This document shows positions 10,701 through 35,763 of a stretch of DNA of 64,000 bases, piece by piece. Each line of letters opens with the position of its first letter. Positions within the stretch are counted from its first letter, which is position 1. The notes under the pieces were generated by a model. It did no database searches, had not been told where the DNA came from, and was given only the letters and a program-made list of their open reading frames with translations. The DNA comes from Paramoeba atlantica (lineage: Eukaryota; Protista; Discosea): contig CDRNVI010000065.1 of NCBI GenBank assembly GCA_977017575.1, forward strand, positions 248,001 to 312,000, written 5' to 3'. A program made the translations under genes and the position numbers.

Positions 10701-11219
10701 CTATTTAAAGATGCGATATTCATCTACTCTGCCCTGAGGAACTACAATGGTTTCTATCGGGAGACAGACTCTCCCCTTCAGAAAAATAACCTCAGCTTCA
10801 GCTCGAGACATCATTATCCTTCTCGTGGGATCTGTTCGATCGGGATGTAGAACAATCTCAAAGAGTGGCACACCCGTGGTGACTTTAAATACGTAATGAT
10901 GAATAGCTGTCTTCCCTTTCCCCATTCTTGCCTCGGTTGGCTTGTACCCTATCGGTATTTCTTCCCGGTCAGAGTGCATGTGGAGCTGAAAGAACCCGGA
11001 CGAGGGCAAACGCTGGAGAATTGCCAATCGTGCCTCTTCCATTTGAGACATTGTAATACACCCAAAATCTGTTGTTATGAGACCCCATATGCCGCGAATC
11101 ATGGCAGCTTCATTATTGATATACCTAGGGTCGCCGTGTTGTCTGGGTTGCTTAACGGGCTTTCCTGATTTAGGGTGTATGTAATGCCAAGCACGTGTAA
11201 GTCGAGATATATGAATCAT
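10701..11219 (-). CDS. MRPL16: Mitochondrial ribosomal protein uL16m
   Basis: GIWGLITTDFGCIT..QMEEARLAI and KPTEARMGKGK are L16 signatures. Confidence 0.85.
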   Translation of the reverse strand: MIHISRLTRAWHYIHPKSGKPVKQPRQHGDPRYINNEAAMIRGIWGLITTDFGCITMSQMEEARLAILQRLPSSGFFQLHMHSDREEIPIGYKPTEARMGKGKTAIHHYVFKVTTGVPLFEIVLHPDRTDPTRRIMMSRAEAEVIFLKGRVCLPIETIVVPQGRVDEYRIFK

Positions 11220-11413
11220 TAGAACATTTGCAAGGATAATCGGGATACTCTACATGAACTCAATAATAAAGATTTATAGTAAAAGAGTTAGTGTACTGCA
11301 ATGCCCTTATAGTGTTACGTTTACATCATGAAAACAGCACGAAAATAAATTTGAAGTCGGATTCTTCTGGACAAAAAGAATTGCAACTTGCACACAAGTC
11401 TGAACTGTTGTCT

Positions 11414-13039
11414 CTAATCTATGATTATACATTCGCTATTACTTTTGGTTGCTTTCGAATTTGTGTGACTCGTACAATCCGTGTCCACTACATTGGTGCC
11501 ACGTACTAAGTGAGGTGTGTCTAGTTTTTCAAGTTTTCTCTTTCTTAATGAAGCTAAGGAATTTCCATGTTCACCAATACGTTCAGAGTCTGTGGACACC
11601 ACCTCATCGCTACCAGCAAAGGAACTGCAGATCTTTTTACCACTATACGGAAAATATCGGGTAATTGATTTACGCTGCATTTCTTTCACGCGATCTGAGT
11701 ATTTGTAATGTTCAAATCCATGAGCGTTTATCGATACAAAGCTAAAACAGTATGGGTTTTCAGTACTACTCTTCGGAACATGTGAAACAAGGTCCGACAA
11801 GAGGGCATCTACTAATGCCGTAGAATCATCCGTATCCTTTACGTTTGCGCCCGCAGGATATGAACTAGTCCTTGTCAAGTTGCCGCATTCCGGGACACAG
11901 CGTAGCACTAATGTGATGCGCTTCGGGTAAAAGGTACTACGGCATGCACCAAAGTGTATGTCGTGATCAACCCGGTATCTACGGTCATCTTGTAGATCAA
12001 CAAGATCTTCCACCCTATGTACCACCTCTGCGCACAACATTTGCAACCAGGGTAACAAGTTTGTCGTTGGCGGGATCTCTTTCGCTGCAACTATGCTTTT
12101 CGGAAGCGTTCTTTGAATAACTGAGGCATCTGAGTAACCTCGAGCCGAGCGCAATATACAGTCTGTGGTAGAGAGATCAAAATACAAGTGAACCGCATCA
12201 AAATCATGTTCCCACAGTTCAGATGCCGTCCGCACACCAAGTAAAGATGTGACTTTTTTACCGAAATCGCCGCCATAGCCCCTTAGCTTACGTACTTCAA
12301 TGTCTTTCATAAAATCAGAAACTCCGGAGTCCAGCAGAACAGCTTGTTGGTTGGGCTTGTACTTTGAAGAGGCATATTTTGCGAGAGGCTTCGTGGATGC
12401 AATTCCAGCACTAAGACGATATTTCAATTCCTGAAAGACAGCTTGTCGGATTTCGTGCGCGACTTCTGCCGCAAGGTAAAAATGTTTGATATTGTGTGTG
12501 TCGTCCGCAGCTGAATTGCGTAAAACAGTACCGAATCCAGTAAGCCATTGGGAGATGTCCGGTACATAATTGTTCCCATCCTCTCGCAATCGCAAGTAAA
12601 CTTCTCGAGTGACGTCTATATAAGCTTCATCAATACCAGCCCTTTCGTAAATACACAGAGATCCCGCCACACGCTGAATCAGACTATGTATCCGCCGCGA
12701 GGCTTGGCGATAAGGTTCCAAGCTTACTTTGTGGGTAGATTTTGACGGGTTCGAGTGGTATTCATAATTCACACTTCCGAGAGCGTAGGTCGCCGTGTGA
12801 ACGGCCCGTACATCGGGACATACTCTCAAAGCTTCCGAGAGATGCATAAATCGTGTCACGCCACGAGCCCTTGCAGCGTAGTTCACAGCTATGAGACTGC
12901 CCCATTGTTGAACTACGCAAGGGACATCATGGGGTATCTGAAGCCGTAGCTGCTCCACTTGACAGTAGAAGCAATCAAGATCGACATGGATAATAAAGCG
13001 ATCTTCATTATAAGGAAACTCCAAGAGGTGCTCCAACAT
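11414..13039 (-). CDS. POLH: Y-family DNA polymerase, Pol eta-like
   Basis: IIHVDLDCFYCQVE, IAVNYAARARGV, ERAGIDEAYID, LRGYGG; PIP-like 'QRKSITRYF' near the C-terminus. Confidence 0.88.
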   Translation of the reverse strand: MLEHLLEFPYNEDRFIIHVDLDCFYCQVEQLRLQIPHDVPCVVQQWGSLIAVNYAARARGVTRFMHLSEALRVCPDVRAVHTATYALGSVNYEYHSNPSKSTHKVSLEPYRQASRRIHSLIQRVAGSLCIYERAGIDEAYIDVTREVYLRLREDGNNYVPDISQWLTGFGTVLRNSAADDTHNIKHFYLAAEVAHEIRQAVFQELKYRLSAGIASTKPLAKYASSKYKPNQQAVLLDSGVSDFMKDIEVRKLRGYGGDFGKKVTSLLGVRTASELWEHDFDAVHLYFDLSTTDCILRSARGYSDASVIQRTLPKSIVAAKEIPPTTNLLPWLQMLCAEVVHRVEDLVDLQDDRRYRVDHDIHFGACRSTFYPKRITLVLRCVPECGNLTRTSSYPAGANVKDTDDSTALVDALLSDLVSHVPKSSTENPYCFSFVSINAHGFEHYKYSDRVKEMQRKSITRYFPYSGKKICSSFAGSDEVVSTDSERIGEHGNSLASLRKRKLEKLDTPHLVRGTNVVDTDCTSHTNSKATKSNSECIIID

Positions 13040-13244
13040 TCAATTCATAATTACAAAAATGTTATAGCGCAGTGGTCAAAAGTAGTATGGTAATCTGTCC
13101 CAAGGTAGATAAAAAACAGAAAGTAGTTAGCTAAATAATAACTGCAAAATATTTACTAATTATACTGCAAAAAAATTTGAATAATTTAGAGGATGCATAA
13201 CAGATAAAAACATAAAAAGATTGAGGTGGTCTGGAAAGAGAGGT

Positions 13245-13306
13245 ATCCTCATCGGGCGACTGCTGGCTAACAGTTTCGAGCATAAAAATGCAACCCGATG
13301 ATTCAC
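13245..13306 (-). promoter_or_regulatory. Candidate SECIS element in the SelK 3' UTR
   Basis: mRNA sense: GUGAA-UCAUCGGG...CCCGAUGA-GGAU, i.e. a UGAA/GGAU non-Watson-Crick quartet closing an 8-bp helix. The apical AA is not at the canonical position. Confidence 0.5.
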
Positions 13307-13341
13307 AGTAAACAGATTTCGCCAAAGATGGCAAGAACGAA

Positions 13342-13395
13342 GCGCAAGGTGAGCACTGCGGAAATAATGAAATAGTACGATGTCTCACCTTGCGC
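13342..13395 (-). promoter_or_regulatory. Perfect 12-bp stem-loop starting 6 nt after the SelK UGA (SRE-like)
   Basis: Arms GCGCAAGGTGAG (13342-53) and CTCACCTTGCGC (13384-95), 30-nt loop. Confidence 0.6.
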
Positions 13396-13653
13396 CTATC
13401 CTCAGCCTCCGGCACCACCAAACTGTGCGGGTTTCGGTAGGCAGGAAATACGCGGTCCTCTTGGGGCCCTGTTATCTGAGTTGTCGCCGGGACCTCGATG
13501 ACGAAAATTGTCCACGTGCTCTCGTACCGGAGCAGTGGTGAAGAGTGTTTGAAGGAAAAGAGCTACCAGAGAAAATAGTAGCGCTATTCCATCATGGATT
13601 TCCACCGACCAAGGTCGTGAATCCGAGAGGCGGCCTTGGGAAATATATGTCAT
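13396..13653 (-). CDS. SELENOK: Selenoprotein K (in-frame UGA read as Sec at 13404-13402; true stop TAG at 13398-13396)
   Basis: MTYISQGRLSDSRPW N-terminus, one TM segment (IALLFSLVALFLQTLF), Gly/Pro/Arg-rich tail ending AGG-UGA-GGA-TAG (GGUG*), the SelK layout. Confidence 0.88.
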
Positions 13654-14213
13654 GATTTATTGTCCGTATATTAATTTTAGTAAGGAGATGGAAATCAAAA
13701 GAATGGATCAACAGGTTATTTTTTTTATTAATACAAAAATACAAAACAATATGTCTCCGCAAAACGCTACTTTTTTGAATACACATGTAGGATTTAAAAA
13801 CCTACTCTATAGAAGCACAAGGTTAAATGCTATTCTGAACTATTTTACTGTTGAGTGCGCATTGAAGTGAGTTGCAAAGTAGTTAAAAAAGGAGGAGTGC
13901 GTGTACACAACGTTCTGTAAAACCGAATTTTTAATGCCATACAAACTATTTTTTTGAAGACAAAATTTAATACACACTCTATTCTTCACAAAGCCTTCAA
14001 AAGAGATATTGGCTAAAAAAACTACTTTAGGAAGCTACAGCTGTGTTCAAAGAGTACTTTGAACACATTTTTGTATACAAAGACCTAAGTATTGTGATAT
14101 ACTCAGTGATCCTCACGCTTCCTACAACTTTATACTTAAAATTATTTTTGATAGACACAATTCCGCATGTCGGAAATTCTCAAATCCAAAGGTATTCTAC
14201 CATAGATTGATGA

Positions 14214-16076
14214 CTAATTTTCCTCGTCTGGACTATAAATTTCCGGAAGATATTTCTCAGGGGAGGAATCTGTTGGAGTACTCGTCTCTACCTGAGGTTT
14301 TGAGACATTGACTTCATCTGCACTATCAGACGGTTCGTTAGGAGTCGTTTCTTCTGTCACAGCATGGGTGAACTCCACGGGAGTGCTTACTTCTTGTGGG
14401 ATTGCTTTCTCCTCGTTGACCTCGGGTACACTGACCTTCACCGCGGCTATATCCACAACCGCTGCATTCTCAGGGGCATCCTTTCCTTCCTTGAGAGGAT
14501 CTGCCATCCCTCCAGAGCGGCTCTGTACTTCTTCTTCCTGCATATCCTGTCCAGCTTCAGATGGAACGCCTAATACCTCAGACGTGTTTTCCACAACGCT
14601 TTCGGTTGGCTCCGAAGTGGCTAGCGGTTGAGAACACGCAGCTGGTGATTTCGCAGGACTTACCGAACTGAGTGCCTCCGTGCTTTGAGCCCTGCGGCTT
14701 GTGGTTTCCGGGGTGACAGCTGCAGTGATCTGAACCACTGGACTCGAGAGGTGTGAAGGAGTAGTTGTCACAGGTGTGGCCGTTTCACGTGCGGGAGTTG
14801 CCAGTGCGGAGAGCGCTTGCTCGGGGGTAAGTGGTGCCTCTCGAATCGGAGTTGACTGTTCGGATGGCGCTTTTGTTTGAGACTTTATGGGAGTGGAGTG
14901 CGTACTGGGTGGGTGCGCTACGATAATGTTGTCAACAGTAGATGATGCAATTTCTTCTGAAGTGGACTCCGGTGTCTTCTCGGGTGGAGCACTGGCTTCC
15001 GCCACAGTTCGCTCTACGGCCGGAGTTTCACTCAAAGGACTTGCTTCTTCTATTTCTTGCATTGCCACGGCGGTTGTTGCAGAATCGCTTGCGCCATGCT
15101 CTATTTTTTCCAGTTCTGCGAATGCAAGTTCAATAAATGAACGAATTTCATTGGCTTTCTCTTTGAGCGAGCCCTGTGCAAGGTTGTAGTGCGCCTCTAT
15201 ACGAGAACGGACAGCCGTTAGGGAAAGAGATTCGGCGTCCTCAACCGAGGTAGTACGCATCATAGTGCTTATAAAGTTCTGAATTTCATTATTAGGCGGT
15301 ATAACTTCTTCAACTACCACACTCTTTTTTTCTTTAACTTGGCGTTGCCGTTTGGCAGGTGGCTGTGGTGTCTCTTCCTTTTTGCTATCACTTCTACCTC
15401 GTTTGGTGGGACGTTCTTTCTTTTTTTGAGATGTATCCGTTTTCTTTGACTTCGCTGTGGCCGATTTGCCAGACTTGGCGGGCGTTTTCGTAGATCGTCC
15501 CTTGGCACTTTTAATTCGGGAAACAGTTTTTAGCTTTTTATTGGTTTTCCGAGTTTTCCTTTTCTTCTTTGTCACGGTTCTCTTTTCCTTTTTTTGCGCA
15601 TCAAGAGATAGTACAGGACTCATCAAAAACTCACTCAAATGTTGATTTTGCTCCGCTACAGTTTTCCCTAAAATTCTGAAAGTCTTTAGAATAGGTTTAA
15701 GTTCCTTACGAGTTTGTGATTCAATCGCTTTAGTTAAGTGGGAAGCCGTAATCCCTCTAGTTGAACTAGATCCCAGAAAGCCACGGAAGTTCATTAATTC
15801 TCTTTTTCGCGATTGCTTTAGTCCGGGACGTCCAACAAGTATCCGGTATAGAGGAGTGCAATCTGTAGGCAATATTTTCTTCCATTCAGGGAAAACTTTA
15901 AGAGGTACGCCACTGCCGTCTACGGGGACTTCATACGTCACTTTGCGCACTGGTGTCGCGGCCGTCGGACTAAAGTAAACTGCATCCCTCCGTATGCGTG
16001 TGCTTCGTCGATCCCCATCAGCTTCTTCGGTGCCGTGATTTTTCTCAGGCGTTTGAGTTTCTACGTCGTCAGACAT
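14214..16076 (-). CDS. DEK-like chromatin protein (DEK-C domain, long acidic Thr/Ser/Pro tail)
   Basis: RRSTRIRR N-terminal motif, Lys-rich linker, 'IQNFISTMMRTTSVEDAESLSLTAVRSRIEAHYNL..SLKEKANEIRSFI' (DEK-C pattern). Confidence 0.65.
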   Translation of the reverse strand: MSDDVETQTPEKNHGTEEADGDRRSTRIRRDAVYFSPTAATPVRKVTYEVPVDGSGVPLKVFPEWKKILPTDCTPLYRILVGRPGLKQSRKRELMNFRGFLGSSSTRGITASHLTKAIESQTRKELKPILKTFRILGKTVAEQNQHLSEFLMSPVLSLDAQKKEKRTVTKKKRKTRKTNKKLKTVSRIKSAKGRSTKTPAKSGKSATAKSKKTDTSQKKKERPTKRGRSDSKKEETPQPPAKRQRQVKEKKSVVVEEVIPPNNEIQNFISTMMRTTSVEDAESLSLTAVRSRIEAHYNLAQGSLKEKANEIRSFIELAFAELEKIEHGASDSATTAVAMQEIEEASPLSETPAVERTVAEASAPPEKTPESTSEEIASSTVDNIIVAHPPSTHSTPIKSQTKAPSEQSTPIREAPLTPEQALSALATPARETATPVTTTPSHLSSPVVQITAAVTPETTSRRAQSTEALSSVSPAKSPAACSQPLATSEPTESVVENTSEVLGVPSEAGQDMQEEEVQSRSGGMADPLKEGKDAPENAAVVDIAAVKVSVPEVNEEKAIPQEVSTPVEFTHAVTEETTPNEPSDSADEVNVSKPQVETSTPTDSSPEKYLPEIYSPDEEN

Positions 16077-16242
16077 GAAATAAATCCTTAATGTTACTTT
16101 TAATAAGAGTGCGAAATATCAATTCGTTGTGGAATAAATACGGGCGGAAGGAAGATACGATATAAACACAAGGACACACGAGCAAGATTCGCCGTATAAA
16201 GGATTACACGCCGTATAAAGGAAACACACAACTGGTTGAAAT

Positions 16243-16848
16243 TTATACATCAAGAACAAATGTTGCGTGATACGAGGATTCTAAAGGTGTGATCAACTCA
16301 GTACGATTTAGTATGGACGTATTCGGGCCTTTCCATATAGCAAGTCGGTGTTTTGTTATCGCTTTGACTTCGCCCCCAGCCGGAGTATTTCCATTGTTTG
16401 ATATGCACCATAACCGTGCGCCACACTGAATTTGCGATTTGTGTCGAGAGATACTTACGTCAGTGGGAGATTGAACTAAATCAGTAAAGGACTTGTTTGT
16501 ATTTTTAGGTAAATCAATAATATTATCCAAAAGGAATACTCTTACAGTGGAGCAGGTTACTCTTTTTGTTGCGGATATGTGCAAATATTGCTCAAGAAGA
16601 TCGTACAAGATAGATGTTTCATCAGGTGCGGAAGAAAATATGTCTTTAATCAGTGAGGTACTTTTAAACTCTAAACCTTGAGGTTTATCGTTACTATGAG
16701 TGTCCGAAATAGTCACGTTACGTACGCTGGATTCACCCAGAAGCACAGAGGAAAGGGATAGTATTGATTCTTCCAAAAGTGAGACAAGATTATATGACCA
16801 GCAGTGCAACATTAGGTCTGCTGTGTGGTCTACGTGTTCGTATGGCAT
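16243..16848 (-). CDS. Archease (RtcB tRNA ligase cofactor)
   Basis: N-terminal YEHVDHTAD and C-terminal EVKAITKH...TFVLDV. Confidence 0.92.
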   Translation of the reverse strand: MPYEHVDHTADLMLHCWSYNLVSLLEESILSLSSVLLGESSVRNVTISDTHSNDKPQGLEFKSTSLIKDIFSSAPDETSILYDLLEQYLHISATKRVTCSTVRVFLLDNIIDLPKNTNKSFTDLVQSPTDVSISRHKSQIQCGARLWCISNNGNTPAGGEVKAITKHRLAIWKGPNTSILNRTELITPLESSYHATFVLDV

Positions 16849-17265
16849 GATATCTTATACAGTGGTACCCATGTAATTACAACAAACGTACGAATGTTAT
16901 ATTTGAATTGTTTGTATATTTTGTTCGTATATTTGAAATATACAAAAAAATGCAAGGTCTACCTGTCCTACATGTTTCTCTGCCTACATGATCTACGTGT
17001 ATCTACCTTAATAAGATAGGATTAGAAGACTTACATAATCTATAGGTTAGACGAAACGAAGTGTATGCAATCTGGAAAAAGACATTTAAAAAGACTCTTT
17101 CTTGACATAATACACTGCTTGGTATGTTTCGTAAGACTGGAGACTGCCTTGTGCCAGAATCCTATAATCTTATTACTCCTTAATGAGATGTGAGTTATAG
17201 TTGCTACCACACTGTTTGGTGAAATGGAGTCCAAAAAGACATCCTGGGTCAGAGCGCAATAAGTG

Positions 17266-17811
17266 TTATGATTTCAATTTTTCCAAGTATTCCGCTCGCT
17301 GTTTTGCAAACATCGTTTTTTCTCTATGCATCATGCGTGCCTCATTATTTATTTCATTATACATGATGTAAAGCGGGTATGAAATCATTCCGATCGCAAA
17401 TCCCGCACACCAAACCGGAATGAGACGCTGGGGTACACGGTTTTTTGGCCAAAAACACATCCCTACGACAGCGAAACCTCCTAGAACCAGTCCAGCGTCA
17501 ATTCCACGCTGAAAAGGTTCACTACCAAGGTAAAATTTCCACTGTTCAGAAAGTTCTCGCCGTCGCCTCTGACCAATATCAAGCCCTTCCATGTTCTGAA
17601 TTACTTTGTTAATCGCAGCTTGATCTTCCCGAGCAACGATCTGAGGACCAACACTTAAGGTTGCTAGACTCTTATTCCGGTCCGGCGTTACATCAGGCCG
17701 AGGAATTGAAATATCATTACGTACATCTAGAGGAGATGAGTGTGTTCTTGTGGTAACGACTATATCCTTGTTTTGCTCATCCGCAGTAGCCGAGCTCGAT
17801 GAGTTTCCCAT
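17266..17811 (-). CDS. Hypothetical membrane protein, possibly N-myristoylated, two TM segments
   Basis: MGNSSSS start, two hydrophobic helices, C-terminal coiled coil; 181 aa. Confidence 0.7.
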   Translation of the reverse strand: MGNSSSSATADEQNKDIVVTTRTHSSPLDVRNDISIPRPDVTPDRNKSLATLSVGPQIVAREDQAAINKVIQNMEGLDIGQRRRRELSEQWKFYLGSEPFQRGIDAGLVLGGFAVVGMCFWPKNRVPQRLIPVWCAGFAIGMISYPLYIMYNEINNEARMMHREKTMFAKQRAEYLEKLKS

Positions 17812-18179
17812 TTACGAAAAAATTAAGTCTCTGAAATATCCGAATGCTTAAAAAGCAGAAATAATCCAAAAATCCTGCGTTTGATACTATTCCTATCTCT
17901 TTTTCTCATTCGTGTGCATAAATTTACGGGGTAACAATGAAATAACATAGCGCAATGATATTAAATTTATGTGGAATGCGCTTATACCTATGAATGGTGT
18001 TGTACGTACATAAACAATGTAAAAATCAAAGCATACGATATGGAACATCAAACTATACATCAAACGAATAGGTGGCGTAGATTCTACCTCAACCCTTTAT
18101 AGAGGACAAAATGACACCTATTGCTCATCATACTCTGGCACACAATATGTCTGATGGGGTAATAGCGCATTGTACAAAG

Positions 18180-18371
18180 CTATTTACTCTTTTTGATTCC
18201 TCCTTGTGAAAGGGGACCTCCCTTCGACTTTACCTTCTGAGCCAGCTCTGCAATTTTCTTTGCCTCCTCTTGTTTTTTCTTCTGAAATGCCACATCATCA
18301 TCGTCTACTTCATTCGTTTGTTTTTTGGGTTGTTTCAAGGGCTTCTGCTTTCCTCCTTGTTTGGAAGGCAT
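18180..18371 (-). CDS. TMA7: Translation machinery-associated protein 7
   Basis: MPSKQGGKQKPLKQPKK...DDVAFQKKKQEEAKK...KGGPLSQGGIKKSK. Confidence 0.93.
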   Translation of the reverse strand: MPSKQGGKQKPLKQPKKQTNEVDDDDVAFQKKKQEEAKKIAELAQKVKSKGGPLSQGGIKKSK

Positions 18372-18581
18372 TGAACAAGGGAAATAGATACTGATAATTA
18401 AAACTGAGGAAGTAAAAAACGAAAACGTACTAGTATATCCGGCATGTAATTAATCATTACAATGCACGTCTCGATAGATAGAATGTAGGACTACGTATAC
18501 TTTTTAGAAATGTATGAAAGGTTCGAAATAACCTCTCTAATTTTCGTTCTATTTCTTCTAAAACGGAAGGTCATTTTCGTA

Positions 18582-18896
18582 TTATAATAATAATATTATA
18601 ATATCGCTTTTTGAAATCATTTTTTCCCATATTTCGTTGGCCAAGTCCTTCTCCCAATCACGCATGATCCTGTGATTGTTGCCAAGTGCATTGAGAATTT
18701 CTTCAGTATTTGCTCCCTTGGGGCGTAATTGTTCATAGTTACGAAGTAAAGCGTATGCTGCTTTGCATGACAAGTTCGTCTTTGCCACAAAACAGGGAAC
18801 GCAGCGACGGACAAAAACATTTACACTCATTGAATTGTCGTTCGGGGTCAGTGAAAAAAGTTCCGGTTCGGGTGCGATTCTCTGTCCCTCGCGCAC
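18582..18896 (-). CDS. Hypothetical protein
   Basis: Open frame on the coding strand (first ATG at 18830) with protein-like composition; no motif. Confidence 0.35.
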   Translation of the reverse strand: MREGQRIAPEPELFSLTPNDNSMSVNVFVRRCVPCFVAKTNLSCKAAYALLRNYEQLRPKGANTEEILNALGNNHRIMRDWEKDLANEIWEKMISKSDIIILLL

Positions 18897-18933
18897 TAAA
18901 CAAGTGTGATTGATATGGTGATAGTAATGGTTG

Positions 18934-19509
18934 TTATGGAGCGAATGACTCCACGACGGTCAGTCGCGACATTTTATGTGAGTCCGCTGGCCTATTCACG
19001 TGATGGGACCGAGGATATTTCTCGGCGTATTCACGACACTCTTTGTTTTTCTTCTCCAAATCTTTCGTTCTACCAGTCGGGGTATCCATTCCCAAGCAGC
19101 GCTCACGAAAGAATTTTGTCAAAATACGGGGAAACCGCATTGGGTCCTGTACAAGCTGTTTTCGAACTACTTGCCTTACAGAGCTTGCCTGTTGTGATGG
19201 AGAGGACGACATTTCCTCTTCGAGCCTCGCGGTACACTCTCGTCGTACTGAGACAGGAACATAACTCCCTGACGGAACGTTATCGGAAATTTCAAATCTG
19301 CTGTGGGTGGGACCATCTGCTGCTTCCGTGGAAGCATCTCGCTGCATGGCAGTTCTATTCTTCTTCGCCAAATTGGTTCTCTTGGCACGAACCGAAGTAA
19401 CTGAAGGAGTAGTAGATGAAAAAGATTCGGAAGAATTTGCTTCAGCTAAAGTTGGCACGATTGCATCTGATGAAAGAGCTGGGGGAGAAGGTACGCGGAT
19501 AGGAATCAT
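18934..19509 (-). CDS. Hypothetical protein (Ser-rich N-terminal half)
   Basis: 191-aa ATG ORF on the coding strand; no motif. Confidence 0.55.
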   Translation of the reverse strand: MIPIRVPSPPALSSDAIVPTLAEANSSESFSSTTPSVTSVRAKRTNLAKKNRTAMQRDASTEAADGPTHSRFEISDNVPSGSYVPVSVRRECTARLEEEMSSSPSQQASSVRQVVRKQLVQDPMRFPRILTKFFRERCLGMDTPTGRTKDLEKKNKECREYAEKYPRSHHVNRPADSHKMSRLTVVESFAP

Positions 19510-19843
19510 GCGCCCCCTTCCTCGAACAGAGGTGTGTATTGTGAAAAAACAAGTAACTTAACACTAAAAAGTAGAAGACTGATTGCAAATACATTTTTTA
19601 AACATTTTATAAACATATATTCTGCTAAAAAAAAATTCTTTCAGAAACCACCCAAGCACTCAAAATGTTTCGACCTTTCGACCGTCGAACGACGTCGAAT
19701 TCGACGTCGAACGACAGCTATGATTATTTCTTTAATTTAATGTATCAAGCTGAATTCCCAACTCACATCTTTGAATTGCGAACATGACTGCATCTAGAAT
19801 CTGCAGCAACTTCTAGATCCAGTATTGCAGTGTAAAGCACCAT

Positions 19844-21304
19844 CTATTCCTGCGTCGTTTTCGTTACGAATTTCATTTCTTCATTCACAGTGGGCAGGAA
19901 CGGACGAAGCACTTCTGGTATCATCACCCCAGTCTCTGTTTGATAATTCTCCACAAGACAACAAATCGTACGTGGTATTGCACAAAGCGTCGAGTTGAGC
20001 ATGTGTGGATGTTCCTTCAGCGCGGAGGCCAGTGTCCCACGGGTGGTGGGACCATACCGGCACCCAATACTACGGGACTGGTAGTCCGTGCAGTTTGAAC
20101 AACTCACAAGCTCACGAAACTTGCCACTTCCAGGAAACCACGCCTCAAGATCCCACTTCCGGGCAGCGGCGTTGTTCAGCGCGCCGGAGGCTATATCCAC
20201 CACCCGGTAGGGAATCCCAAGACTCGTGTAAAACTCCTCCGCACATTTCATCATCTCCTCATGGACGGCCCACGAGATTTCATCCCGGGGACTACACACC
20301 ACAAACTGCTCGATTTTATCAAACTGGTGCACACGAAAGATACCAAGGGTGTCGCGGCCGTGACTGCCGGCCTCTTTACGGTAACACGAGGAGTAACCCG
20401 CATACCGTTTCGGGACCCGCAGGTCCTCCTCATTGTACCACCGGTTGCGGTGGTACGCACATAGCGGTTGCTCGGAGGTGGCAATCAGATATTTATCCTC
20501 CCCCTCCCCGGTGACTTTGTAGAGCTGCTCGTCAAAATCCGACAACTGGGCGACCTCCCCCATACACTCCTTGGTCATAAAAACCGGCGGGTAGAACGGC
20601 ATATAGCCCCGTTTTGCCAGAAAACTCATCCCGTAATGCAGCAACGCGACATGGAGGAGCACCAGATCCCCGTGGAGCACGTAGGCCCGGCCCCCGGACA
20701 TCCGGGTGACGCGCTCGCTGCAGTCCATCACCCCGAGCGCCTCCATGAGGTCCACATGGTGCTGGGGTTTACGTGTGGTACAGTCCCCGCGGGTGCGCAG
20801 CACAGCGTTGTGCTCCTCACTCTCGTGGACCGGGGCAAACTCGTGGACAATATTCCCGATGGCTGCGAGTACGCGGTCTCGTGCCGCCTCAAGCGTCTTC
20901 GCACGCTCCATCTCCTGTGGGACGAGATGGGACGAGATGTGCTTGGAGAGGGCTTTGAGTTTTGGTACCGTCAAGGAGTCAAGGCTGTCCATCATGAGCT
21001 TCCCGGTGCGACAGGACTCGAGGAGCTCGTGGGGGAGCTCGATCGGTTCGGTTGTGAGCGTCAGGGACTCAAGAGAGGGCGCTGTGTTCTTGGATTTTTT
21101 CATTTCGGTTGCGATTTTCTTGCTGCACAGTCCAACGGATTTGTTCATGCCTTCGAGGGAGTGCTGGGCGTGTCTCCATTGGGTATCAAGCTCAATGACC
21201 TCATCCACCAGTTTAACATTGCTCCATCGGCGACGTTGGCTTTCACGTACGAGATTTGGATTGCCGCCTTTCTCAATGCGAAAGAGATTTATATCAAGTG
21301 GCAT
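19844..21304 (-). CDS. SARS: Seryl-tRNA synthetase, cytosolic type
   Basis: MPLDINLFR start (ATG 21304), YLIATSEQP, CYRKEAGSHGRDTLGIFRVHQFDKIEQF, RELVSCSNCTDYQSR, HMLNSTLCAIPRTICCLVENYQT. Confidence 0.97.
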   Translation of the reverse strand: MPLDINLFRIEKGGNPNLVRESQRRRWSNVKLVDEVIELDTQWRHAQHSLEGMNKSVGLCSKKIATEMKKSKNTAPSLESLTLTTEPIELPHELLESCRTGKLMMDSLDSLTVPKLKALSKHISSHLVPQEMERAKTLEAARDRVLAAIGNIVHEFAPVHESEEHNAVLRTRGDCTTRKPQHHVDLMEALGVMDCSERVTRMSGGRAYVLHGDLVLLHVALLHYGMSFLAKRGYMPFYPPVFMTKECMGEVAQLSDFDEQLYKVTGEGEDKYLIATSEQPLCAYHRNRWYNEEDLRVPKRYAGYSSCYRKEAGSHGRDTLGIFRVHQFDKIEQFVVCSPRDEISWAVHEEMMKCAEEFYTSLGIPYRVVDIASGALNNAAARKWDLEAWFPGSGKFRELVSCSNCTDYQSRSIGCRYGPTTRGTLASALKEHPHMLNSTLCAIPRTICCLVENYQTETGVMIPEVLRPFLPTVNEEMKFVTKTTQE

Positions 21305-21467
21305 TTTGTGAAGACTCGAGAGGCGAGAAGAATAAAATACATTAAACACTTCAATAAGACAATGATTTGATAATTGGTGCTTTCATACAATTAGAGCAAA
21401 AAAAGTGTTAAGCAAACACACTAAACGAACTACAGAGGACACAAACCCCCATTTTTTGTAAATTGTA

Positions 21468-21965
21468 CTAGTGCGATACAGACCGCCGTCGAGCGTCCCC
21501 AGGCATAGGAACGGGTGAAGCACGATCAAAACTGTCCATCCACGATTCAGGCGGAGGCGAAAACTCCTCAGGTCGTGGAGCACTGTTTTCAAAGGTGGAA
21601 CCTGCGAAAGGGTGCGCAGACGGTTTTTCATTATCGGCTCTCAACTTGAGATATCGTCGTACTGGATTGGGTCCTTTCAGCAAGCCGCGGCGAGACTGAT
21701 CAGAGAGAAATGTTATCTCACTTGGGGTGAGTAGACCAGAAGTCATACTTCTCTCAACTTCCGTTTTGAAAGGGGAATTGCGTTCGGAACGTTGGTCAAA
21801 GTCAGAACCTCGTGAAAAATCGGAACCTTGATGGTCTCCCGCCAAAGCATTGGAATTCGAAATGTTCTGCGAGCCTGAAGCACTTCCTTCTGACGCCGCG
21901 CCGGAGAGCCTAATCCCACGGAAATAGTTTAAGGGCATGATCCCAAGTAAAGCAAAGTAAAACAA
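21468..21965 (-). CDS. Hypothetical protein
   Basis: 165-aa ORF on the coding strand (likely start MPLNYF at 21938); no motif. Confidence 0.55.
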   Translation of the reverse strand: MFYFALLGIMPLNYFRGIRLSGAASEGSASGSQNISNSNALAGDHQGSDFSRGSDFDQRSERNSPFKTEVERSMTSGLLTPSEITFLSDQSRRGLLKGPNPVRRYLKLRADNEKPSAHPFAGSTFENSAPRPEEFSPPPESWMDSFDRASPVPMPGDARRRSVSH

Positions 21966-22254
21966 AGTAAAGTGAAGAGGTGTAAAGCCTTTGAGATGGT
22001 GTAAACGAATAAGTACTGTTGACTGAAAGTTTCAGAAGCTTTTTTACTAGAACTAACACTACAAATGAAACCTCATCTGGGAGCCAAAACTCCGTAATGA
22101 ATAATCCGGCTCAGCGACTAAATACAAAAATATATGCTGTAAGGAGCTAGTTAGTGTTTTGGTATTTTAACATGGAACGTGACAACAAAACAGTGCTCCC
22201 AATCTATAAATGCCGCGCTATAACATCGTCTCGAATCCTAACACACACATACAC

Positions 22255-23928
22255 TTAGTCCCCCCGTATGCCTACTGCACACATACCTCCGCCCATAAAC
22301 TTCACATTGTTATACACCCATTCCTGAGCCACCTCCTGGAAGGGCTCCGTTGTGTGGCTCTCACTGACGGGGAGGCAATGCAGAATCGCACCCTCCTCCA
22401 GCGACAGGTGGTAGACCTGCTTGGCGGGGTCCGTGATCGTGAGCGCGCACGGCTCCTCCCCGTACCGCTGGAGAAACCGACCTCGCTCACGCACGCTGAA
22501 CACCTCCCCGGTCTGGTGCCGGAGGATCCCCAGCCCCTCAGCCTTCCCGGTGTCTACCAGCACGAAGCACTCCTCGTTGTAGACCGCATAGCTCAGTGGG
22601 AGTGCACCTTTGCATGGGGTAGGGTGCGGCCGACTGGGACACCATAACACGTCCACAGCCCCCGGGTGGTCGACTTGAATCGGCAGCAGGGTGGGCTCAA
22701 ACGGGAGGTACGCCGCCGGGGTGTCGTCCTCATACGCCGGACGCGGCACATCCCCTGCGGTGAAGGAAGAGAACAGCGCGTTAAAGGCATAGACGTAGTC
22801 CAGCGCGGGACGTGGTACCCGGGAGGCAGGATAGCGAAAGTCCCGGATCGCGTCTCCGGCCATCACGGTCTCGTACATGTGGAGGAAGTTGTTCACAGTG
22901 GTGGCATCCGCTGTGGTATCCATCCCATCCAGCTGGGGAAACAGCCCATTGGTGAACTTCGCCACATCCGTAATCTGCGACCCGTCCACGTCACTAATCA
23001 AAATCACACTATCCTGATGAAACCACTGCAGCTGCAGCACATCACACGCCAAACACTCCGAGTGAACCGTAAAAAACGCATGCCGGATATACTTCCGTAC
23101 CGCCCCCGCGACCAGCGCCGTCACCCAATCCCCCAGCACCGCCTCCGCACGCGTCTTCCAGCTCCGTGCGAACCAGTGCAACTCCCGTCGCAGCCTCCCC
23201 GTGTTCACCTCCACCCCCTGCTCCTCAAACGGGTCGGCCCAGGTCACGTGTCCATTCTCGGAGCGTCTCTGTAAACGGATCTTCAGCAGCACCGGTCGCG
23301 GCACACACACCTTCCGTCGCCCCGCGACCAGGTCCCACCAGCTGCTGCGGTCGAACACGTCAATGCGCATGGGGACCCCGGAGGGGGCCTCCCAGGGGCT
23401 GTAGGGCTCTTGGATGCGGCTAAGGTTGAGATCGAGTAGCTCTACTAAATGGTGAATGATATCCTCCTCGGTGGTGTGGGGGGAAGAGGAAGAGGAAGAC
23501 GATGAAGAAGAAGAAGAGCGGGAGCTACGCATCGAGGACGAAGAGGGGGAGGGGTGCCGACCACGGACGGGGGTGATCGGGGTGAGCCGACTTGGGGCCG
23601 CGGAGGGGTGGGTGGAGAGACGGGAACGTTCCTGGAATAAGGGCGCGTCGGGGGGTTTGTGCAGGAGGGGACGGGGAGGGGGGTGGGAGGAAGAAGAAGA
23701 AGAAGAGGAAGAGGAAGGGGGTGGACCGGGGAGCGTACCGACACGACGTGTCGTGGTGGTGGTTTTCGTGGTGGTAGGGGGGAGGGTAGGGGGGAGGGGT
23801 TTGTGTCGACGGGTGGTGGGAGCGGTCGTGTGGGTGTGGGGGTTGTCCGTGAGGGAAATGGGGAGGGGGGAGGGAGGGGGAAGGAGGAGGGAGGAGAGGA
23901 GGAGGAGAGGGAGGAGGAGGGAGGACAT
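22255..23928 (-). CDS. Hypothetical protein with Leu-rich N-terminus, Pro/Ser/Thr low-complexity region and globular C-terminal domain
   Basis: Long open frame; likely ATG at 23928 (MSSLLLPLLL). Very GC-rich. Confidence 0.7.
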   Translation of the reverse strand: MSSLLLPLLLLSSLLLPPPSPLPISLTDNPHTHTTAPTTRRHKPLPPTLPPTTTKTTTTTRRVGTLPGPPPSSSSSSSSSSHPPPRPLLHKPPDAPLFQERSRLSTHPSAAPSRLTPITPVRGRHPSPSSSSMRSSRSSSSSSSSSSSSPHTTEEDIIHHLVELLDLNLSRIQEPYSPWEAPSGVPMRIDVFDRSSWWDLVAGRRKVCVPRPVLLKIRLQRRSENGHVTWADPFEEQGVEVNTGRLRRELHWFARSWKTRAEAVLGDWVTALVAGAVRKYIRHAFFTVHSECLACDVLQLQWFHQDSVILISDVDGSQITDVAKFTNGLFPQLDGMDTTADATTVNNFLHMYETVMAGDAIRDFRYPASRVPRPALDYVYAFNALFSSFTAGDVPRPAYEDDTPAAYLPFEPTLLPIQVDHPGAVDVLWCPSRPHPTPCKGALPLSYAVYNEECFVLVDTGKAEGLGILRHQTGEVFSVRERGRFLQRYGEEPCALTITDPAKQVYHLSLEEGAILHCLPVSESHTTEPFQEVAQEWVYNNVKFMGGGMCAVGIRGD

Positions 23929-24149
23929 GGGGTGGGGGGAGAAGAGCAAAATAAAGAGAGGGAGAAAGGAGGGAGAAATAGAGCTCTGGAAAGGAGAAAA
24001 GAGTAAGGGTGGTGTGCAAATGAAGGAACACAGTACGTGCGCGCGTCGATTGACTTCGCCCAACAACTCAACGTAACAAATCAAATTCCAATTGAGGGTT
24101 GAAACGATGCACCGCAATACTCTTGTACGATGCGTAAATCTCTCGAAAG

Positions 24150-25217
24150 CTAACTTTTAAGTGATGATGAAGAGGAATGTGAAGAGATACAGAGGGGATC
24201 AGTTAATGCTAATCCCTCGTAATCTCGTTTTGAGATCGTCCAACCACCCTTTTTTTTGTCAAAAACATTATTTGCTCGAGCTACCGAGATGGGGAGAAGA
24301 CCACAAGGACGAGCGAACTGAACGATCCATCCGGGACGGAACCAGAGAACATCGTTCCAAAAGCGCATATTATGATTTTTTTGTAGACGAGTCTTGTGAT
24401 AAAGAAGTGCTTCCCGCATTCGCGAGGGCGCTTCGTCACTTTCGCTATGTTCGAACAAGAGCTGCAGCGTAGTTCCGACATGAGTTGCCATCGGTTTCCC
24501 CAACATGTCTGAAAATTTGTTCAATGCTGAATGCAAAACGCTGCATTGTTCAAGAAATGTAAAGCAGCTTGCTTTAATTTCCAAAGCTCCGTACCGGTCC
24601 AGCAAACGCTTACACTTAATAATGGACTTTGACGCCCGTGCCTTTTCACTTTCGCTGTACACAAATGCCGATACTGTGTCCATATTCTTCGCCAAAAATT
24701 GCATACATGTAAACTTATCCTGACACCAGCGCGTCACACCTCCGAGCCTCGGAGTTTCGTCACCCTCAGTTTCACGCGCTACTTGCAAAGCACTAATCAA
24801 TTTCGGTCCCTGAGCAAGAAGCTGGCGATGCTTCTCGTACCATGACGTGACATTGCATGACAGTGTGGCAATTAGAGAATTGGACATGTCCGGAGATACC
24901 TCCTTCAGCTTTTCGAGGCATCCGATTAGAGTAGATTGTAGTTGTTGACGGCAGAAAACTGGGGCATCCTCCCCAAGGCCATGGTACGATTGACGGAAGG
25001 TTTCTTCCGCCTTCAGAACTCCCTGATCGAAGCGAGCCAGAGCGAGATCCAGAGCAACTCCCTTGTATTTCCCTTTTGCTGCACTCGCTCGTCCTCCTGA
25101 ATAAAAGGACTGACTGAACGCTTTTTTGAAAAGAAAGCACGGTGACTCTTCGTAGGGCTTCAAGGTCGTTTGGCAAATGTTATTCAGCAAAATGCATAAT
25201 GAATGAGCTTCCCCCAC
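24150..25217 (-). CDS. Hypothetical protein, possibly hAT-transposase-derived
   Basis: 355-aa open frame with a GTG track start. 'GEAHSLCILLNNI' (CxxH-like) and 'PRLGGVTRW' recall hAT catalytic-domain motifs. No TIRs seen. Confidence 0.45.
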   Translation of the reverse strand: MGEAHSLCILLNNICQTTLKPYEESPCFLFKKAFSQSFYSGGRASAAKGKYKGVALDLALARFDQGVLKAEETFRQSYHGLGEDAPVFCRQQLQSTLIGCLEKLKEVSPDMSNSLIATLSCNVTSWYEKHRQLLAQGPKLISALQVARETEGDETPRLGGVTRWCQDKFTCMQFLAKNMDTVSAFVYSESEKARASKSIIKCKRLLDRYGALEIKASCFTFLEQCSVLHSALNKFSDMLGKPMATHVGTTLQLLFEHSESDEAPSRMREALLYHKTRLQKNHNMRFWNDVLWFRPGWIVQFARPCGLLPISVARANNVFDKKKGGWTISKRDYEGLALTDPLCISSHSSSSSLKS

Positions 25218-25500
25218 TCTCTGACTCTCGCATTGCGAGGTTAATAGCCGAGAGTCAGGTTGGCGACACCATCGCCGTCCTATGGTCGTCAGAAAAAGTG
25301 TCCTATAGAGAATTGTGGAAAAGGGTTATCATGATGATTGGATAAGACAAAACCACTATGTTGGTCGCTTAAGAGGAAATTTGGCGACCTCATGTTCCCT
25401 CCGACGAATGTTCAATTACTCGCTACTGACCTCTACTGCGAACATCACATCAAAAAGCACTCTTTTTCATCTTCAATTTACAAGAAGACGACGTATGCTC

Positions 25501-26913
25501 CTAATCAGTACCAGTCCGTGGTTGCAGCAACATCTTTCTTGTAACTTGTCTCGTGCTTTCAATTGGCGTGGAAGACTCCACCCGTGAGCAAGAAAATGAT
25601 TTCTTATAAAAATAGAATATTGTCCCAAAAAGTAAAAGCGCCGTCGAAATAATGGTTATGACAAGCCAGGCAAGGAGTTCTCGAGGCGGACAGAAGTGTC
25701 GAAATCGAGAGCGTTCTAGTATTTGCATAACCCACAGAAGTATGTGAGGCGAATGCTCAGGTAAATCACAAACTAAATTTGGTCTTTCCAAATCTCTTTC
25801 TCGGAAACATGCACTAGTTGTGTGCTGTCCAACATGTAGTTCACTAAAGGGAATTGTATGACTCCACCGGATGAATCCCTTTACATCTTTAATTTCGAGT
25901 AGAATTTCTCCTTCTTCCCACTTAATGGTAATCTTCCCGTAATTCAAACCGAAGTAACTCGCAATTCGTGTAGGCAAAGAAGGTACAAGAGCACTTAACC
26001 ACGACGGGACGTGGTGAGTAATCCCACTCGATGTAAATTCATACACAGGATATCCTAAAGGTGAGCAGTTTAGGCGATGCACCTCTGAAAAGTGAATGTC
26101 ACCGGATAGGAAAAGGATGCCACCCCTACCGCTGGACGCTACAATAGAGACAAGCCTCTTCCTGGCACGAGGAAAGCGACCCCAGTGCTCTGTGGGCCTG
26201 TTATCGCTTATGATTTGTACGCCGGAACCGATAAGAACAATATCCCCGGGCTGGTCATTTAGAACACGGGATAGCCACGCCCACTGGGTTTCTCCCAAGA
26301 AATCCCCATCCGACGTACCATACGGATCCTTGAAGTAGCGCACGTCCAAAAGAATAATCAGCACGCGCCCCTGAGCAAGTGAGTAGAAACGATACACTCC
26401 ATTTTGTCTTCTAATAGGATGATCCATAGGAGTGTCGAGAAAGTCTAAGAACAGACTCTGAGAAGCGTCTTTGTTGAAAAATGTTCTGTCACCATCATTG
26501 ATTCCATAGTCATGGTCATCCCAGACCCCAAATATCGAAATATTGCTCCTCAAAAGTTCTTGATACTCCTTGCTCATTTTTTGCTTTTCATATACACGCG
26601 CCATGTGATCCAGTGAACTGGGCTGGAAACGAAATAACCATTTTCTCGTGTCAGCATAGACTGCATCCCCAAGCCACATCCATGCTGTTGGGGAATCTTG
26701 TAACACAGCGTGCCATATTAATTGAGCTTTGTCTGGACGATTACAACTTCCGAACGTGATAGTGGTGACATTCTCTAACTCTTTCTTTAGGTGGTCTTGA
26801 TCCGATAATCGATTTCGAGTATTTTCTTCTACGCTAGTTAAGAGCCCAGTGAGAAGCAGTGACCTTTGTGGACATTTCCATACAAGCCAAACTAGTAAAA
26901 ACCAGAGATGCAT
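25501..26913 (-). CDS. PhoD-like alkaline phosphatase D family protein with C-terminal TM helix
   Basis: FGSCN, WLGDAVYAD, VWDDHDYG, LLDVRYF, FLGETQWAWL, LSGDIHF, EFTSSG. Confidence 0.92.
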   Translation of the reverse strand: MHLWFLLVWLVWKCPQRSLLLTGLLTSVEENTRNRLSDQDHLKKELENVTTITFGSCNRPDKAQLIWHAVLQDSPTAWMWLGDAVYADTRKWLFRFQPSSLDHMARVYEKQKMSKEYQELLRSNISIFGVWDDHDYGINDGDRTFFNKDASQSLFLDFLDTPMDHPIRRQNGVYRFYSLAQGRVLIILLDVRYFKDPYGTSDGDFLGETQWAWLSRVLNDQPGDIVLIGSGVQIISDNRPTEHWGRFPRARKRLVSIVASSGRGGILFLSGDIHFSEVHRLNCSPLGYPVYEFTSSGITHHVPSWLSALVPSLPTRIASYFGLNYGKITIKWEEGEILLEIKDVKGFIRWSHTIPFSELHVGQHTTSACFRERDLERPNLVCDLPEHSPHILLWVMQILERSRFRHFCPPRELLAWLVITIISTALLLFGTIFYFYKKSFSCSRVESSTPIESTRQVTRKMLLQPRTGTD

Positions 26914-26987
26914 GACTACTGAAATTGAAAAACAGTCATCTTTTTATCTTGTCGTACCTCACATACACTGTACATGTGTTTTTTTCA

Positions 26988-27031
26988 CTTTTTCAAAATT
27001 CGAGGGGGAGGCGTATAGCCGATTGCTAGTG
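26988..27031. mobile_element. Solo terminal fragment of the MITE-A family
   Basis: Reverse complement TA|CACTAGCAATCGGCTATACGCCTCCCCCTCGAATTTTGAAAAA matches the left end of MITE-A (3854 onward). Confidence 0.75.
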
Positions 27032-27520
27032 TATATCAAAATCTATAATTCTTTACATGTTCATATTAGAAAAAAGTATCCATAAGAAATACACAACGAG
27101 TTTTTTTCGAGTGTATATTACACCACGAGTTTTTTTCGTAACGGTAGACAATTGACTTGATTCTTTTTCGAGCTCGAGATAAGAAAAAATGGTTCTTCTT
27201 CTGCTAAATTTGTTTTGAAAAATGCCTAGGGAAGACATAATGAATTTTAGGACTCTTCTTTTTGATTGCGTGCAATACCAAACGTAAAAAGATCAGTGCA
27301 ATAAATTGTTTTCATTTTTGAGTCGAATATATGCTTGTTTGAAGTGACATCACGTAGAATGCAAATACTGCTATTGCGGCAGTAGTATGAAAAAAAACTT
27401 GGCGTATCCGTCCGCGGATTCCGGCGAAATGGTATATTTTTGCATCGTCTGGATGATGTTAGTATAAAGGGGGGTTTCACCCCTTTGAAGTGTAAACAGG
27501 GAGGGACAGCATACAATATA

Positions 27521-27936
27521 CTGTCCCCCCCCCCACTTAAACGCAACCAGGTTTTGGCCTAAAATTGCGCATAAGTAGCCGGGTCAAAAAAGAGTGAAAA
27601 AATAAATTCGCGCCGCTTCGCGACGCGTGTTTCTATCATGAGTTATATACGCGGGGTACCCTTCGGGGTTGCTTTTTATATACTATCCCCCCTAGCAATC
27701 CGCTTTCTGCTTTGTGCCTTTCTCCCCCTTCTTCCTCTACGGTCCTCAAAAGTCGATATCAAAAGCGATGTCCCATTCTTCTGACACGGGTCGTTGCATG
27801 TATAAGAATGATTTATGTGGCGCGATAGTGTCTGAGGTACATGAATGGGTTGGAACCGCGGCCATTCCAAAAGCCAAAGTTTCGGATGTATTCCGCGTGA
27901 AGTTAGAAGAAGTTTTTATCAAGGGTCGCCAAGGTA
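27521..27936. mobile_element. Truncated left part of MITE-C, cut by the duplication junction
   Basis: Same sequence as 44348-44763; ends at the junction. Confidence 0.85.
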
Positions 27937-28049
27937 GCTTCATTATTGATATACCTAGGGTCGCCGTGTTGTCTGGGTTGCTTAACGGGCTTTCCTGATT
28001 TAGGGTGTATGTAATGCCAAGCACGTGTAAGTCGAGATATATGAATCAT
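27903..28049 (-). pseudogene. Truncated chimeric uL16m 5' fragment at the duplication junction
   Basis: First 38 codons of L16 (MIHISRL...INNEA) fused to TLATLDKNFF*, read from MITE-C sequence. Confidence 0.9.
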
Positions 28050-28243
28050 TAGAACATTTGCAAGGATAATCGGGATACTCTACATGAACTCAATAATAAA
28101 GATTTATAGTAAAAGAGTTAGTGTACTGCAATGCCCTTATAGTGTTACGTTTACATCATGAAAACAGCACGAAAATAAATTTGAAGTCGGATTCTTCTGG
28201 ACAAAAAGAATTGCAACTTGCACACAAGTCTGAACTGTTGTCT

Positions 28244-29869: not shown

Positions 29870-30074
29870 TCAATTCATAATTACAAAAATGTTATAGCGC
29901 AGTGGTCAAAAGTAGTATGGTAATCTGTCCCAAGGTAGATAAAAAACAGAAAGTAGTTAGCTAAATAATAACTGCAAAATATTTACTAATTATACTGCAA
30001 AAAAATTTGAATAATTTAGAGGATGCATAACAGATAAAAACATAAAAAGATTGAGGTGGTCTGGAAAGAGAGGT

Positions 30075-30136
30075 ATCCTCATCGGGCGACTGCTGGCTAA
30101 CAGTTTCGAGCATAAAAATGCAACCCGATGATTCAC
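30075..30136 (-). promoter_or_regulatory. Candidate SECIS, copy 2
   Basis: Identical to 13245-13306. Confidence 0.5.
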
Positions 30137-30171
30137 AGTAAACAGATTTCGCCAAAGATGGCAAGAACGAA

Positions 30172-30225
30172 GCGCAAGGTGAGCACTGCGGAAATAATGA
30201 AATAGTACGATGTCTCACCTTGCGC
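30172..30225 (-). promoter_or_regulatory. SRE-like stem-loop, copy 2
   Basis: Identical to 13342-13395. Confidence 0.6.
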
Positions 30226-30483
30226 CTATCCTCAGCCTCCGGCACCACCAAACTGTGCGGGTTTCGGTAGGCAGGAAATACGCGGTCCTCTTGGGGCCCT
30301 GTTATCTGAGTTGTCGCCGGGACCTCGATGACGAAAATTGTCCACGTGCTCTCGTACCGGAGCAGTGGTGAAGAGTGTTTGAAGGAAAAGAGCTACCAGA
30401 GAAAATAGTAGCGCTATTCCATCATGGATTTCCACCGACCAAGGTCGTGAATCCGAGAGGCGGCCTTGGGAAATATATGTCAT
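30226..30483 (-). CDS. SELENOK: Selenoprotein K, copy 2
   Basis: Identical to 13396-13653. Confidence 0.88.
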
Positions 30484-32906: not shown

Positions 32907-33072
32907 GAAATAAATCCTTAATGTTACTTTTAATAAGAGTGCGAAATATCAATTCGTTGTGGAATAAATACGGGCGGAAGGAAGATACGATATAAACACA
33001 AGGACACACGAGCAAGATTCGCCGTATAAAGGATTACACGCCGTATAAAGGAAACACACAACTGGTTGAAAT

Positions 33073-35726: not shown

Positions 35727-35763
35727 TAAACAAGTGTGATTGATATGGTGATAGTAATGGTTG

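Follow-up and report, generated by a model that had tools for sequence, protein, structure and literature searches.

A prokinetoplastid selenoprotein K gene with a UGA codon that is probably read as selenocysteine

INTRODUCTION

Selenoprotein K (SelK, also SELENOK) is an endoplasmic reticulum (ER)–membrane protein whose C-terminal selenocysteine (Sec) acts in redox and ER quality control. The metazoan protein has roles in ERAD and palmitoylation. The SelK family, its presence in kinetoplastids, and the misannotation of its genes there have been known since 2006 (PMC1557815), and kinetoplastid SelK was re-examined in 2025 (PMC12153298). In Trypanosoma, the SECIS element of SelK is found roughly 200 nt after the UGA codon (Lobanov et al. 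2006, PMC1557815). UGA has a different fate in another kinetoplastid, Blastocrithidia, where it is reassigned to a standard amino acid (PMC12153298). The Prokinetoplastina are the earliest-branching kinetoplastids and include the Perkinsela endosymbionts; in the literature searched, we found no description of selenoproteins in this group.

Here, we describe a SelK gene in a 64-kb stretch of DNA (“the window,” meaning the whole stretch that was analyzed). The gene had been noticed in an initial annotation as an ORF cut short at a UGA codon and was taken for SelK, which that annotation correctly named as a known kinetoplastid selenoprotein, documented in trypanosomes (PMC1557815). Below, we compare the locus with its homologs, consider its possible RNA signals, and weigh other readings of the UGA.

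RESULTS

The SelK reading frame continues past a UGA codon

The gene is present in two copies in the window, both on the minus strand:

13396..13653, minus strand: SelK CDS, copy 1; 83 codons + UGA + GGA + TAG, identified by Pfam PF10961 and homologs
30226..30483, minus strand: SelK CDS, copy 2; no difference from copy 1

In copy 1, the ORF (13405-13653) opens with ATG at 13653-13651, contains 83 sense codons, and ends with ...GGT GCC GGA GGC. It is followed by TGA (13404-13402), GGA (13401-13399), and TAG (13398-13396). The arrangement reported in the initial annotation (an 83-aa ORF, UGA, and GGA-TAG) can thus be read directly from the sequence; the feature is real, and its location on the minus strand had been left unstated. 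If UGA stands for Sec, then the predicted product has 85 residues and the C terminus ...GGAGG-U-G. Since an in-frame stop is located two codons 5′ of the ATG, translation cannot start before Met1.

An error of assembly does not explain the TGA, since an independent assembly and contigs from sequencing runs agree on it. In a contig of the same organism from the independent assembly (L010), the ORF, the TGA-GGA-TAG ending, and the downstream hairpin considered below are all identical to those in the window, and contigs from three runs (two of DNA and one probably of RNA) have the same TGA. Between the assemblies and runs compared, no change is seen in the ORF or the 12-bp hairpin, whereas the flanking UTR varies.

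The ORF is a member of the SelK family

The comparison with the SelK profile, proposed as a check in the initial annotation, gave a match above the curated cut-off: Pfam SelK_SelG (PF10961) scored 28.1 bits versus a threshold of 23.3 (E 3e-6), with ORF residues 2-83 aligned to profile positions 1-86 of 86, i.e., to the full profile. A HMMER search of 1.84 billion representative proteins returned only five matches, with E values down to 3e-7; the four that were examined are all short and SelK-like. A profile built on five homologs retrieved 21 proteins, among them “Selenoprotein SelK/SelG [Trypanosoma melophagium],” a mollusc “Selenoprotein K,” and truncated “hypothetical proteins” of Trypanosoma, Leishmania, Leptomonas, and Novymonas. 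Pairwise E values against homologs were 1e-11 and 8e-7. In a protein atlas, the best 18 feature matches were all SelK_SelG clusters (top score, 0.92). No match was obtained when the single ORF was used as a query in a word-index protein search or in a sequence search of the PDB, and two metagenome scans for closer SelK loci found no relatives.

Full-length homologs share their start and end points with the ORF, whose product is within the size range of the family (about 80 to 125 aa). The short N terminus (MTYISQG...) matches the family pattern M-x-Y-[IV]-x-x-G, and residues M1, Y3, G7, P14, F33, P42, and H46 are invariant in the SelK alignment (A2). Residues 23-41 make up the sole strongly hydrophobic segment (mean Kyte-Doolittle value of 2.05; one predicted helix), and 17 of the 38 residues of the tail are Gly, Pro, or Arg (seven, five, and five, respectively). 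The Pfam and atlas matches, the named trypanosome SelK in the profile search, the N-terminal motif, the single helix, and the Gly/Pro/Arg-rich tail bear out the proposed identity and, at the level of sequence comparison, support the assignment of the ORF to selenoprotein K (SELENOK, Pfam SelK_SelG) of a prokinetoplastid.

The lineage was read from the SerRS gene of the window, whose product is at most 65% identical to any database sequence. In a maximum-likelihood tree, this SerRS is placed inside Prokinetoplastina (support 100/98), as sister to the Perkinsela clade (99/97) and outside bodonids plus trypanosomatids. When synteny around SerRS was compared with Perkinsela and a related large contig, the gene order differed and no SelK was located nearby. 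“Streamlined genome,” a term used in the initial annotation, finds no support in the sequence analyzed.

In trypanosomatid and bodonid-like loci, SelK lies immediately 3′ of a gene for tRNA thiolation of the CTU1/Ncs6 type (PF01171 + zn-ribbon_14; L002:393-1385, L006:565-1536, L007:594-1601, and L009:274-1275). The SelK of the window has no such neighbor and is preceded by a gene for a 620-aa protein of no recognized kind.

The UGA and the codons after it are retained among homologs

The ends of SelK genes were compared at seven homologous loci: the window, L001, L002, L006, L007 (T. melophagium), L008, and L009. The pattern expected of SelK is an in-frame UGA that closes the Gly-rich tail and precedes the true stop by one to three codons. 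At all seven, TGA is followed by one or two codons and then by a stop (U-G-stop, U-G-R-stop, U-R-stop, or U-R-R-stop):

Window: TGA GGA TAG
L001 and L008: TGA GGT TAG
L002: TGA GGC TAG
L009: TGA GGG CGC TAA
L007 (T. melophagium): TGA CGA TAG
L006: TGA CGA AGG TAA

The Gly after UGA is encoded by all four of its codons (GGA, GGT, GGC, and GGG) in four lineages. Synonymous change of this sort is the pattern of a translated codon and not of untranslated sequence past a stop. There is no Cys in place of the Sec. The recoding of UGA that was suggested initially is thus supported, indirectly, by the U-G-stop and U-R-stop endings with their synonymous Gly codons and by a suitably positioned SECIS-like element.

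Stop codon usage was also tallied for the 20 long minus-strand ORFs of the window: 11 end with TAA, 8 with TAG, and 1, the cation-efflux ORF at 9121-10515, with TGA. TGA stops are rarer in this set than expected at 44.5% G+C.

A SECIS candidate in the 3′ UTR

A pattern and energy scan of the sequence 3′ of SelK revealed a candidate SECIS element with the following parts:

13245..13306, minus strand: SECIS candidate, form-2–like, starting 98 nt 3′ of the UGA
30075..30136, minus strand: SECIS candidate, copy 2
13306-13302, minus strand: 5′ core of the candidate, GUGAA
13301-13293 with 13257-13249, minus strand: helix II, 9 bp
13291-13280, minus strand: extra small hairpin, 12 nt
13279-13275, minus strand: unpaired UCGAA
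13274-13259, minus strand: 6-bp mini-stem with AGCC loop
13248-13245, minus strand: 3′ core of the candidate, GGAU

The scanner used constrained folding and required N-UGA-N and N-GA-N together with a helix that closes directly on their quartet. In the 356-nt intergenic stretch of the window, it returned one credible element, that at 13306-13245. When [AG]UGA, at least 8 bp, and an energy of −12 kcal/mol or lower were required, the candidate was one of two matches in the unique sequence (94,346 nt, both strands); with the limits set to 9 bp and −18 kcal/mol, it was the sole match. The number of matches expected by chance per 200-nt target is ~0.004, or 0.03 at the loosest setting.

As a control, the scanner was applied to the T. 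melophagium locus (L007), where it recovered AUGAU...UGAA at +131, including an unpaired AAA at the customary spacing; this position fits the ~200 nt given in PMC1557815. Rfam detected no SECIS in the whole window at the gathering threshold and none in 12900-13700 at E values up to 10. It also detected none at the T. melophagium (L007), L002, and L006 loci. The blank Rfam result for the window therefore counts for little, since the SECIS of the control trypanosome locus was missed as well.

Homolog searches yielded no alignable orthologous 3′ UTR for the SelK of the window. Judged by sequence, the strongest comparative support for the candidate is the core found in L008, the closest SelK homolog, whose 3′ UTR contains GUGAA...GGAU at +87, the same unusual core as in the window. 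In the L008 element, GUGAA is followed by a helix of nine positions, then by GACAAA and a mini-stem (4 bp, 4-nt loop), and the element ends with GGAU. The position of the two candidates is similar and their core is the same, while the helix sequence is entirely different.

The candidate of the window departs from the usual form in having G for A before UGA, in the 12-nt hairpin inserted between helix II and the unpaired AA, which makes a three-way junction, and in its weak helix I (4 bp). Because of these atypical features, we rate it as a good SECIS candidate and not as a proven SECIS.

Two natural variants of the candidate are present in L010 (L010:17996-18066). One is a U to C substitution at 13259, in the closing pair of the mini-stem, which is also found in run X5; the other, seen only in L010, is one extra U in the T-run at 13284-13288, in the loop of the inserted hairpin. 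Both spare the quartet and helix II. Run X5 further differs from the window at 13150 and 13177.

Several other elements were encountered. The other strong scan match in the window, at ~53138-53226 on the plus strand (AUGAC ... UGAA with a 76-nt inner part, −26.8 kcal/mol), is antisense within the minus-strand ORF 52862-53737 and is probably due to chance. A second AUGA in the SelK 3′ UTR (13252-13249, inside the 3′ strand of helix II) was considered as a 5′ core and rejected, as no downstream GA partner with a helix was found for it. Two environmental kinetoplastid-like loci contain SECIS candidates with canonical AUGA...GA cores (approximately L002:1839-1945 and L009:1868-1960); the apical parts of these elements are branched and very long, with about 90 to 100 nt between the cores.

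A stable hairpin directly follows the reading frame

A second structure lies between the SelK stop codon and the SECIS candidate:

13342..13395, minus strand: hairpin with a perfect 12-bp stem (GCGCAAGGUGAG paired with CUCACCUUGCGC) and a loop of 30 nt; begins 6 nt past the UGA
30172..30225, minus strand: 12-bp hairpin, copy 2, inside 661 nt identical between the copies

The stem is formed by pairing of 13395-13384 with 13353-13342. The folding energy is −28.2 kcal/mol (z score of −4.45), and none of 200 shuffled sequences was as stable. Equal stability is reached by only 1.5% of 60-nt windows on the minus strand in the unique part of the window. A stem-loop beginning 6 to 13 nt after the UGA is present at all homologous SelK loci. 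Measured against the local 60-nt background, the homolog hairpins rank at 0% in L002, 4% in L009, and 10% (borderline) in L006; those of L001 and L008 are not above background, and that of L007 forms only over a span longer than 60 nt. The 12-bp hairpin was also considered as the SECIS itself and rejected, as its stem consists of Watson-Crick pairs throughout and lacks a UGA/GA quartet.

By analogy with the Sec redefinition element (SRE) of SEPN1, the 12-bp hairpin is a candidate Sec-redefinition–like element whose function is conjectural. Like the SRE, such a hairpin might slow the ribosome or hinder termination. Since the UGA is almost the last codon of SelK, an SRE-like hairpin at this distance is placed in the 3′ UTR.

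The gene is missing from gene calls

The exact SelK ORF is absent from a collection of 15 billion proteins in which the SerRS from the same contig is present. Gene calls on the L010 contig include none on the SelK strand at the SelK position. The initial annotation had expected to find SelK annotated as a truncated hypothetical protein; in the one gene-call set examined, it is uncalled altogether. A contig from run X4, which is short, of low depth, and from a run whose RNA nature is guessed, covers 13378-13536; it spans the UGA and has no differences from the window. The neighboring polymerase gene has no coverage in the probable RNA run. The SelK gene is very likely functional.

Another probable RNA contig (13882-14120) spans the stretch that separates the 620-aa gene from SelK. 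It suggests that the 3′ UTR of the gene upstream of SelK is no shorter than 330 nt.

SelK is part of a tandem duplication

SelK occurs twice in this assembly because it is inside a 16.8-kb tandem duplication:

11100..44763: tandem repeat of a 16.83-kb unit, with copies at 11100-27936 and 27930-44763 that share 99.96% identity

Each unit contains eight genes, which encode a Y-family polymerase, SelK, a 620-aa protein, an archease, SerRS, another 620-aa protein, a 355-aa protein, and a PhoD-like phosphatase. The initial annotation considered the joint duplication of SelK and SerRS as probably coincidental; we agree, since eight genes share the repeated unit and SerRS is only one of them. The unit copies, whose junction is at 27930-27936, differ by one base (11636) and one 3-nt indel (23690-23692). 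SelK copy 2 is identical to copy 1 over 661 nt (29870-30530), both UTR sides included.

In L010, an ENA contig, the order is right flank, one unit, and left flank, i.e., there is a single copy. A Logan contig from DNA run X2 breaks off at 11106, the base at which exact identity of the two copies begins, which indicates two different left-hand contexts for the unit in the reads. The duplication is thus probably real in the sample of run X2 and collapsed or absent in L010. The presence of two SelK copies, as first reported, holds for this assembly but not for L010. The Y-family polymerase is encoded by one 541-aa ORF in the window (11414-13039) versus three gene calls in L010 (L010:18269-19758); L010 contains many small indels and is noisier, pointing to frameshift errors in that assembly.

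Alternative readings of the UGA

The UGA could be an ordinary stop, in which case the gene would encode an 83-residue SelK homolog without Sec (for instance, after loss of the Sec machinery), with GGA-TAG as a leftover. UGA can end genes here, as in the cation-efflux ORF at 9121-10515. Rfam gave no SECIS match, no gene for tRNA-Sec or the Sec machinery is located within the 64-kb window, and SelK without an in-frame UGA exists in some trypanosomatids (PMC12153298). We nevertheless consider an ordinary stop unlikely, in view of the U-G-stop ending retained in distant homologs with four different Gly codons, the SECIS-like element at the right place and on the right strand with the core of its closest homolog, L008, and the lack of a Cys in place of the Sec. 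The odds are much lower still that an altered genetic code makes this UGA a standard amino acid (Trp or Cys) and not Sec, as in Blastocrithidia. Such a reassignment is known in that other kinetoplastid lineage (PMC12153298), and TGA ends only 1 of the 20 long ORFs in the window. However, all 20 are intact under standard stops, none being broken by TGA, so that UGA is no general sense codon; SerRS aligns to its homologs over 96 to 97% of its length without an internal TGA; at least one gene terminates at TGA; and the UGA in question sits at the Sec position of the family.

It is just as improbable that the ORF is a chance open frame and no gene at all. It is short, was left uncalled by the gene finder, and drew a blank in the single-sequence word search, but it matches the full Pfam profile above the curated threshold, has full-length homologs with the same start and end, is covered by a probable RNA contig, and is identical in two assemblies though the flanking UTR varies. 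Our preferred reading, which we hold with high confidence on sequence evidence, is that of a prokinetoplastid SelK gene whose UGA is read as Sec under the direction of a downstream SECIS-like element. In this scheme, the UGA at 13402-13404 would be decoded as selenocysteine by tRNA-Sec and the Sec elongation factor, and the SECIS-like kink-turn element in the 3′ UTR (13245-13306) would direct this decoding to yield the 85-residue product ending with ...GGAGG-Sec-Gly.

DISCUSSION

The SelK gene of the window adds one more member to a known family. Two of its RNA features are of mild interest, and the existing picture of how selenoproteins work is unchanged by this gene. Its identification fills a missing gene call. 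As judged from homology, it appears to extend Sec use, so far documented in trypanosomatids, to the Prokinetoplastina, which would imply that the Sec machinery has been kept in this lineage. Because Rfam missed every kinetoplastid SelK SECIS tested here, the GUGA-core SECIS candidate, with its inserted hairpin, and the hairpin that recurs beside the UGA may also be useful for training programs that look for SECIS elements and selenoproteins.

A broader proposal is that kinetoplastid SelK mRNAs contain a second recoding signal conserved in structure only, the hairpin 6 to 13 nt past the UGA, along with a lineage-specific GUGA-type SECIS with a three-way junction. We put it forward tentatively and think it rather doubtful. 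If true, it would place an SRE-like element outside animals and within a 3′ UTR.

The closest parallel to the hairpin is the SRE of vertebrate SEPN1 (reviewed in PMC3541580), which, like it, is a stable stem-loop ~6 nt 3′ of the Sec UGA. The SRE is part of the coding sequence, whereas the hairpin of the window is located past the real stop, in the 3′ UTR, and has no sequence similarity to the SRE; among the homolog hairpins, at 6 to 13 nt, only some are above background. The SECIS candidate resembles the eukaryotic form-2 SECIS (SECISearch consensus AUGA ... AA ... GA) in its UGAN/NGAN non–Watson-Crick quartet, in helix II closing on the quartet, in the unpaired AA that immediately precedes a mini-stem whose loop has 4 nt, and in its position in the 3′ UTR. 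It differs from that form in the G before UGA, the weak helix I, the lack of an Rfam model match, and the three-way junction created by the 12-nt hairpin between helix II and the AA.

At the protein level, the SelK of the window is 44% identical to metazoan SELENOK over the first 39 residues (Elysia crispata Selenoprotein K, P0142) and has the same architecture, with a Gly-rich stretch up to the Sec position, but its tail is shorter and cannot be aligned. It is only 31% identical to the SelK of T. melophagium (P0125). Previously known kinetoplastid SelK ends with C-x-x-x-U-R-stop, whereas the protein of the window ends with GG-U-G-stop, like the metazoan GGUGR, and has no Cys close to Sec. The SECIS candidate has a GUGAA/GGAU core and an extra hairpin, in contrast to the AUGAU/UGAA core, and the CTU1/Ncs6-like gene that precedes SelK in L002, L006, L007, and L009 does not do so in the window. 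With the kinetoplastid proteins (PMC1557815; T. melophagium P0125), it nonetheless shares the Pfam family, a length of ~85 aa, the M-x-Y-I-S-x-G motif, one transmembrane helix, and a Gly-rich tail; in both, Sec (predicted in the window) is followed by one or two residues, the SECIS or its candidate lies 100 to 200 nt after the UGA, and the gene has been missed or truncated by annotation.
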